The notes under the pieces were generated by a model, which worked only from the letters and a program-made list of their open reading frames with translations, had not been told where the DNA came from and ran no database searches. A stretch of 64,000 nt of DNA. Origin: Ylistrum balloti. Its lineage: Eukaryota. Of the stretch, positions 49,801 to 50,806 are shown piece by piece. The stretch lies in NCBI RefSeq assembly GCF_031769215.1, contig NW_026781958.1:1798001-1862000 (forward strand), read 5' to 3'. How positions within the stretch are numbered: position 1 is the first letter of the stretch; the number at the start of each line of letters is the position of its first letter. The position numbers were made by a program, and so were the translations under genes.

Positions 49801-50806
49801 ATGTAATCAAATAATGGAAAGACGAGTTGCTTACATTACAGCAATGTGCTCTTTCTTTTCACTGAAGGAATGATTCTGAAACAAACAAATGATGTTCTAC
49901 AGCAACATATCTTCTGATAGCAGCATGCAACAATGTGTGCTTGTGAAGGCTTGTTCAGTAAATTTATGCATTTTTCTTCCAGAATTTAAGACAATGATCA
50001 ATGAAAATACAAAATAGATCTGAAATCTTCCATGTTTCCATGTGGCTGCATGTATAATGAGATCCCCATCAATTTAAATTGGTGCAAACATTTGTAAGAA
50101 GTAAAATTGAGTGTACATATCACATAAACTAATATTGGGGTTAATGAATTAGTCAAGTTGTGCATAACACCTAATGATTTTAGATTTAACCTATCTAATT
50201 TGAGATATTTGTTTTAAAAATTGTGATTTTAACAACTAGAGGTAAGACTAGTGGTGGGCAACTGATTGATTTAAAAAAAAAACTACATGTATTTTGAGCC
50301 AACACATTCCACTTTTGAGTTTAGATTTCTGATATATTGAATACATTTGGTGCAACTTCATTCAATTGATACCCCATCACTAGCATTAACGTATTGAGAC
50401 TCTTGGGATTTGAGCAGAAGATTGAAACTGAAAAAACTAACTAATTATTTATGTGTTGTGTAATAATGTATACTGGTTGAGTGTCTTTGATTTCATTCAT
50501 AATTAACATCGGTCTTGCATTCAGTATTACTAGAAATAGACTCTTTAAAGCATTGAAGATATGTTTCTCAGAGATTTTGTTTGTTGATCCTATTTCCTGA
50601 TACAGTTTTGTATATAAAAATCTATTGAAGCTAAATCATAGGGTAACAGAAAAGCAGATCGTAAATATGTTCCTAGTCAGAATACTGTTAACAATCTAGT
50701 GACAAGTCAAATTTCTCTGAAGCTGCCTTTGATCTTGATTTTCATGTATTGAAAAATGTTTTGTTTTTGTTTTGCAGAGTTTGTGACGATGATGACCTCA
50801 AAGTAA
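43867..50806 (+). CDS. CaM: Calmodulin, 149 aa, 5 coding exons
   Basis: Exons 43867-43869, 46026-46056, 47645-47788, 49302-49544 and 50778-50806 (3+31+144+243+29 = 450 nt), all GT-AG. They join to [149 protein letters not shown], the canonical protostome calmodulin. Confidence 0.99.
46026..46056 (+). CDS. CaM: Calmodulin exon 2 ([10 protein letters not shown])
   Basis: TTTTTTTCAG|GCAGAT...ATAGCAG|GTATGT. Confidence 0.99.
47645..47788 (+). CDS. CaM: Calmodulin exon 3 (EF-hand 1 and start of EF-hand 2)
   Basis: TTCAG|AATTCAAAG...GCAGATG|GTAATT. Confidence 0.99.
49302..49544 (+). CDS. CaM: Calmodulin exon 4
   Basis: ATACAG|GCAACGGC...TACGAAG|GTATGT. Confidence 0.99.
49983..50017 (+). CDS. CaM: Candidate alternative terminal exon of calmodulin ([11 protein letters not shown])
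   Basis: TTTTTCTTCCAG|AATTTAAGACAATGATCAATGAAAATACAAAATAG: same phase as exon 5, and 13/18 nt identical to the start of exon 5. Confidence 0.6.
50778..50806 (+). CDS. CaM: Calmodulin exon 5, canonical (EFVTMMTSK*)
   Basis: TTTTGTTTTGCAG|AGTTTGTGACGATGATGACCTCAAAGTAA. Confidence 0.99.

Follow-up and report, generated by a model that had tools for sequence, protein, structure and literature searches.

A probable conserved cassette exon with an early stop in intron 4 of a bivalve calmodulin gene

Calmodulin is usually treated as a single invariant protein, and its regulation in vertebrates is thought to act via gene number, promoters and 3'UTRs. Conserved cassettes whose stop codon couples them to nonsense-mediated decay are known as poison exons; SR-protein genes have such exons. 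The four calmodulin genes of abalone have five exons and four introns, with an exon 1 consisting of the ATG only and an uninterrupted exon 4, and a longer C-terminus in a Biomphalaria calmodulin model was treated as a misprediction in the same paper (PMC6171432). Three oyster calmodulin-family genes are differentially spliced (PMC6611504). The gene studied here lies in a stretch of 64,000 nucleotides of the Ylistrum balloti assembly (contig NW_026781958.1, positions 1,798,001 to 1,862,000; hereafter the window) and shows the same five-exon plan as the abalone genes (PMC6171432). Unlike the abalone paper, which reports no alternative exon in intron 4 (PMC6171432), our comparison of sequences suggests that intron 4 of the window gene probably holds a genuine, alternatively used cassette exon at 49983-50093 (Table 1).

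In the oyster Crassostrea (Magallana) gigas, calmodulin isoforms X1 and X2 (XP_019925473.1, P0198, and XP_019925474.1, P0307) differ only in EFVAMMTSK versus EFVTMMTSK. Because the difference is confined to the tail encoded by exon 5, two alternative copies of exon 5 are implied. Like the window gene, this is a canonical-type calmodulin gene in a pteriomorph bivalve; its exon 5 copies, however, encode full and near-identical tails, whereas the cassette in the window has diverged (EFKSMML in the scallop) and has a conserved donor. A second case is the "calmodulin-A-like / neo-calmodulin-like" mollusc paralog, for which RefSeq lists, from bivalves, gastropods and a chiton, isoforms (P0101, P0053, P0257, P0243 and P0255) that end in DFM[GEV][YF]..; Pecten and Mercenaria have the alternative exon (DFMGYTTDLLTQIK or DFMVYTSKLL..) downstream of exon 4 and upstream of the canonical last exon (EFVTMMTIK or EFVTMMTAK). 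Similarly, 4 of the 10 loci with the exact canonical product carry a strongly conserved in-phase exon in intron 4, which reads DFH[AT]LAQ[IM][IV]F[STA]R.. and a stop (CTCTTGCAG and then ATTTCCATGC...), and Myzus and Pieris have a tail of this type in proteins that RefSeq names "calmodulin-alpha isoform X1/X2" (P0269 and P0270). The DFH-type exon resembles the DFM..A..IL exon of the mollusc paralog, and the DF-type exon may be an ancient protostome alternative C-terminus of calmodulin, as far as these sequences indicate.

Like the cassette in the window, the DF-type exon is an additional exon that lies in phase within intron 4, upstream of the canonical last exon, and it replaces the last helix of calmodulin, as the window cassette would. 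Its peptide (DF..[LYF]A..[ILV][FLM], 14-22 residues) is strongly conserved as protein across insect orders and molluscs, whereas the window cassette is conserved as RNA and not as peptide; no DF-type exon was found after exon 4 in the window gene or in its scallop orthologue. Taken at the level of gene models and alignments, intron 4 in these genes is a recurrent site of predicted alternative C-terminal exons, and the candidate cassette in the window is of a different type from the DF exons, being conserved at the RNA level and having an early stop. With poison exons it would share conserved splice sites, stops in all frames and a high nucleotide conservation after the stop; classic poison exons, however, are without an in-phase copy of the normal C-terminal helix, and the window cassette starts with one. 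No paper describing such an exon was found in the literature.

The plus strand of the window bears a canonical bivalve calmodulin gene of five exons. Its spliced coding sequence gives a calmodulin of 149 aa with four EF-hands, ending in EFVTMMTSK and identical to the common invertebrate calmodulin. The exact product is on record in 8,590 blocks of public assemblies; the matches of this look-up are very large chromosomes only, probably arthropod, and a cluster look-up of the protein collection returned no entry for the canonical sequence. Exon 4 ends at 49544 (..AAT TAC GAA G, followed by the donor GTATG), and intron 4 is 1233 nt long. The surroundings of the gene in the window are mostly tandem repeats, without a usable neighbour gene for synteny.

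Table 1. Positions of the calmodulin gene, of the predicted cassette and of comparable exons (window coordinates unless a locus is given; L016 is the orthologous locus of the scallop Mizuhopecten yessoensis)
Feature	Position	Strand	Description
Promoter/5'UTR block	43276..44072		blastn against L016: 89.5% over 802 nt
Promoter/5'UTR/exon 1 region	43276..44072	+	ATG at 43867-43869 ends exon 1, then donor GTAAGT
Exon 2	46026..46056	+	10 residues; 100% identical to L016
Exon 3	47645..47788	+	EFKEAF...VDADG; 88% identical to L016
Exon 4	49302..49544	+	NGTIDF...GQVNYE and first base of the next codon; 93.5% identical to L016
Intronic island	49966-50106		Matches L016 15974-16122; 74% over 152 nt, E 3e-19
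Pyrimidine tract and AG acceptor	49966..49982	+	15/17 positions same as scallop (88%)
Predicted cassette exon 4a	49983..50093	+	111 nt (scallop 119 nt); acceptor and donor both conserved
Putative coding part of the cassette	49983..50017	+	(E) and 10 residues, then TAG; scallop (E)FKSMML, then TGA
TGCATG hexamer	50047..50052	+	After the stop; identical in scallop (alignment A2)
Cassette donor GTAAGA	50094..50099	+	5/6 identical; TT before GTAAG kept at L016:16110
Exon 5 and 3'UTR	50778..51648	+	EFVTMMTSK and TAA (50804-50806), coding 50778-50806; 87.8% to L016 over 918 nt, to 51648
Paralog alternative exon and last exon	L013:51544 and 57425; L014:103020 and 105481		Pecten and Mercenaria
DFH-type exons in intron 4	L003:26990; L004:23344; L006:24222; L007:13831		Canonical calmodulin loci of other animals

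A preliminary description of this DNA had proposed that a small reading frame in intron 4 is a duplicated alternative last exon, which would give a non-canonical calmodulin from the canonical gene. The arithmetic of that proposal holds on recounting. The acceptor TTTTTCTTCCAG ends at 49982, 438 nt into intron 4, and the frame that follows, placed exactly at 49983-50017, reads together with the G of exon 4 into 11 residues and then TAG (50015-50017); it starts 795 nt upstream of the true exon 5 at 50778, matches exon 5 at 13 of its first 18 nt with two of the five differences synonymous, and would yield a spliced product of 151 aa. The peptide starts with EFKTMI as compared with EFVTMM of exon 5, in the same phase. 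When the 6,458 AG sites of the two strands are ranked by in-phase BLOSUM score against EFVTMMTSK, only the true exon 5 and an internal EFLTMMARK come before this site, which leads the next sites by a small margin (20 versus 19, 18 and 17). In ~114 kb of intron 4 sequence taken from ten further animals, a single site scored at least 20. At the nucleotide level, the local alignment of the candidate region with exon 5 lacks significance (equalled by 24 of 300 shuffles, p ~0.08). For the window alone, the probability of chance was estimated at roughly 0.01, or ~0.001 when the strong pyrimidine tract is counted, and such evidence only moderately supports a mini-ORF that is not due to chance; it is the conservation of the cassette in the scallop orthologue that decides the question against chance.

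To the window at 43-53 kb, we compared by blastn the canonical calmodulin locus of Mizuhopecten yessoensis (L016), which was reached via a mis-extended GenBank model of the calmodulin of this scallop (P0268). Six blocks are aligned: the promoter with the 5'UTR, exons 2, 3 and 4, exon 5 with the 3'UTR, and one intronic island in intron 4. Under relaxed scoring the island reaches 50221 (E 3e-22), and a very permissive alignment of the window against L016 yielded no other intronic match that was colinear or had E < 0.3. Between the window and L016, 26% of the fourfold sites in the calmodulin coding sequence differ, and apart from the island the introns cannot be aligned; the island thus stands above the background. 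Its boundaries are evident in the identity profile (alignment A2). The 36 nt upstream of the pyrimidine tract show 39% identity to the scallop, the stretch 49983-50093 shows 70% with gaps counted (78% before the stop and 66% after it), and the 31 nt past the donor (50100-50130) fall to ~40%. The acceptor ATTTTTCTTYCAG is shared by the window and L016 (scallop copy ATTTTTCTTTCAG), and the scallop stretch from acceptor to donor is 119 nt as compared with 111 nt in the window. The acceptor, whose conservation in related species had been named as a check, and the phase are kept in the scallop orthologue, in a sample of two species, possibly members of one family.

Neither the window nor L016 nor any of the other loci checked has more than a single copy of the island, and an origin from a repeat or transposon was ruled out because of this. 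A structured RNA or miRNA in the island was likewise ruled out by the lack of an Rfam match and of a stable fold (z = +1.1). The cassette is absent from the canonical gene of the gastropod Pomacea (L017) and from a near-canonical Mytilus paralog (L023, tail EFVHMMTSK), and it was not found in ten other loci, which are probably arthropod. A Logan contig (L015) was set aside as a comparison locus, as it holds a compact gene of some other animal.

The proposed terminal exon, with a 3' end of its own, is unsupported, because neither AATAAA nor ATTAAA occurs from the stop to exon 5 (50018-50777, where only weak variants occur) and because a donor, TT before GTAAG, is conserved, with conservation ending just beyond it. 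As a conserved acceptor and a conserved donor bound the island and identity is ~40% outside, an internal cassette exon is predicted instead. The idea that it is a duplicate of exon 5 survives in part: the phase is the same and EFKSMM of the scallop is closer to EFVTMM, whereas the nucleotide match falls short of significance and the score margin is narrow. The acceptor and start of the scallop cassette give a weak match to the canonical exon 5 of other loci. From these comparisons, the cassette has probably descended from exon 5.

If the cassette were included, the peptide common to both species would be E-F-K-T/S-M-I/M only. The first six codons contain three nucleotide differences between the species, one synonymous (AAG/AAA) and two conservative (T/S and I/M). 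Directly after ATGAT, a 1-nt indel shifts the frame beyond codon 6 between the window and the scallop, and the tails diverge from there (NENTK in the window versus L in the scallop). The altered core that had been proposed for the included form is therefore borne out by translation, with E140, F141 and M144 kept and V142K, while the polar tail is not, since it is unconserved and the scallop, owing to the indel, stops after EFKSMML. In calmodulin, EF-hand 4 has E140 as its bidentate ligand, and the C-lobe pocket is lined by F141, M144 and M145; the shared core would retain E140, F141 and the C-lobe pocket positions, with K at 142. Unrelated EF-hand proteins picked up by a pattern scan (L018, L019 and L021) naturally have YEEFKTMM as the exit helix of an EF-hand, and such a helix is thus plausible, with K tolerated at the position equivalent to 142.

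Beyond the first six codons, the nucleotides appear to be better kept than the reading. The TGA of the scallop and the TAG of the window are both present in the nucleotides of both species, in different frames, and stops occur in all three frames of the cassette in both. The length modulo 3 is not kept (111 versus 119 nt). The longest well-conserved run of the cassette lies after the stop and contains TGCATG, presumably an Rbfox-type hexamer. Because conservation is strongest after the stop, constraint on the RNA, that is, regulated and perhaps unproductive splicing, is at least as likely as constraint on the protein. The stop in the window lies 76 nt before the exon end, which is more than the 50-55 nt upstream of the last exon junction expected of a poison-exon stop, and the scallop stop lies 96 nt before the donor.

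Transcripts were represented by RNA contigs of a close relative (X2), whose 3'UTR aligned to that of the window over 781 nt with 32 substitutions plus indels. One contig, at a depth of ~600, joins 49544 to 50778 with GT..AG and covers the 3'UTR to 51556, and no X2 RNA contig falls within 49545-50757, in one small run whose contigs drop rare variants. The junction from 49544 to 49983, which had been put forward as a test of the alternative exon, was therefore not seen in these contigs, which hold the canonical joint only; inclusion is low or absent in the X2 sample, because the canonical joint is the only one present and nothing covers the intron interval. A further dataset from the species of the window (X1), the only one to contain the region in full, consists of DNA and has a colinear contig spanning 49504-51700, and two runs (X21 and X22) contain unrelated calmodulins that match exon 4 only. 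Twenty-two small runs of an "organism C" contain 0.11 of the sampled 3'UTR words (50779-51500), and no X21 or X22 contig lies there; these matches are possibly A-rich low-complexity words near 51140-51170.

Proteins were searched with exon 4, with a full-length calmodulin (P0016) and with a two-row profile (A1) that spells the predicted isoform. No EFKTM.. tail occurs among the matches listed (120 per search) in these three word-based searches, a negative result of little weight, because an isoform 95% identical to calmodulin would hide in a 90% cluster. In JGI metagenome contigs, the spliced junction pattern gave 0 matches, and a relaxed form of the pattern gave 5, all of which are unrelated EF-hand proteins and were discarded; this negative, too, has little weight.

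We consider it likely, from the conserved cassette with its early stop, that intron 4 holds a splice switch. By default, the cassette would be skipped, exon 4 would be joined to exon 5 and normal calmodulin would be made. On inclusion, the frame would read 11 residues and end at the early stop, exon 5 would become part of the 3'UTR, and the cassette would divert transcripts from normal calmodulin production. The cassette itself would most likely have started as an old duplicate of exon 5. Inclusion of the cassette at all, its timing and the fate of its product are what we infer here. Provided that the exon is real, there is not quite an even chance that its main role is regulatory, namely unproductive or dose-setting splicing in which the included mRNA would be unstable or poorly used; a translated mRNA, giving a calmodulin with a remodelled last helix (V142K and a shortened or altered tail), is a serious candidate with a lesser share, and both roles, or neither, take what is left. 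A regulated switch at the RNA level is favoured by the conservation beyond the stop and by the frame shift between the species, while a translated isoform is kept in play by the preserved in-phase helix start and by the alternative C-terminal exons of related genes.

It is possible, though in our view unlikely, that the cassette serves mainly to make a stable protein isoform whose last helix reads EFK(T/S)M(I/M)..., with V142K, an altered tail and a different target selectivity. Such a reading fits the first six codons, which in the two species preserve the phase together with E140, F141, M144 and a hydrophobic position 145, and it agrees with the tolerance of K seen in YEEFKTMM of unrelated exit helices, with the RefSeq oyster isoforms that differ solely in the tail encoded by exon 5, and with the clearly coding alternative C-terminal exon carried by insect calmodulin genes and the mollusc paralog; moreover, nonsense-mediated decay in invertebrates need not obey the 50-nt rule. 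However, the tail after codon 6 is kept neither in sequence nor in frame nor in length, conservation peaks after the stop, the element is a cassette and not a last exon, and neither a transcript of this kind among the RNA contigs of the relative nor a protein of this kind among the matches listed was found. The peak after the stop would also suit an intronic element that is conserved but not exonic, for instance a transcriptional enhancer or a control of the splicing of exons 4 and 5, with exon-like edges and reading frame by coincidence. For this improbable explanation speak the lack of inclusion in the RNA contigs of the close relative, the non-coding nature of the best-conserved stretch, and the strong conservation of the promoter and UTRs, which makes non-coding constraint common at this locus; yet conservation starts exactly at the pyrimidine tract and AG and ends just past GTAAG, the distance between the two conserved splice sites (111 and 119 nt) is usual for an exon, and the start is in phase and exon 5-like in both species. 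A dead exon duplicate or a chance reading frame without function is very improbable. In its favour, the nucleotide likeness to exon 5 is not significant alone and the peptide score is the best in the window only marginally, but a neutral remnant would not persist as the sole alignable island of four introns with both splice sites intact.

If the cassette is used, splicing would add a layer of regulation to a canonical calmodulin gene: the cassette would either set dosage, by moving transcripts to the form that carries the stop, or yield a second sensor with a changed C-lobe pocket. Should the splice-switched isoform be true, the "invariant" Ca2+ sensor would exist in two states of target selectivity within one animal. 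Taken together, the exons in intron 4 of the paralog and of insects, the oyster isoforms and the cassette in the window would mark intron 4 as a long-standing and little-studied place where calmodulin has diversified in protostomes. A more extended form of this idea, which we hold to be doubtful, is that pteriomorph bivalves make a splice-switched calmodulin (EFK(T/S)M(I/M)...) from the single canonical gene, under tissue regulation, e.g. via TGCATG, and that its exon is an ancient exon 5 duplicate also seen in oysters.

Some other features of the locus were noted during the comparison. The promoter with the 5'UTR (43276-44072) and the whole 3'UTR (50807-51648) show 88-90% identity to the scallop over 800-900 nt, with introns unalignable, and identity of this degree is, on the two sequences compared, apparently very strong non-coding constraint. 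The GenBank model of the scallop calmodulin (OWF56430.1, P0268) omits the true exon 5 and uses instead L016:16271-16330 and a piece of the 3'UTR (17898-17966); the first of these, its exon in intron 4, is unconserved, and the model is probably a misprediction. Directly 3' of the calmodulin gene in the window, a tandem array with a unit of ~58 nt (..CTGTAAACCTCCAGCATAGTCTAGTGTTG..) occupies 52060-52480, and tandem repeats with long spurious ORFs seem to make up much of the remaining window, e.g. at 3000-3700, 6650-7620, 16900-19300 and 26660-27540.
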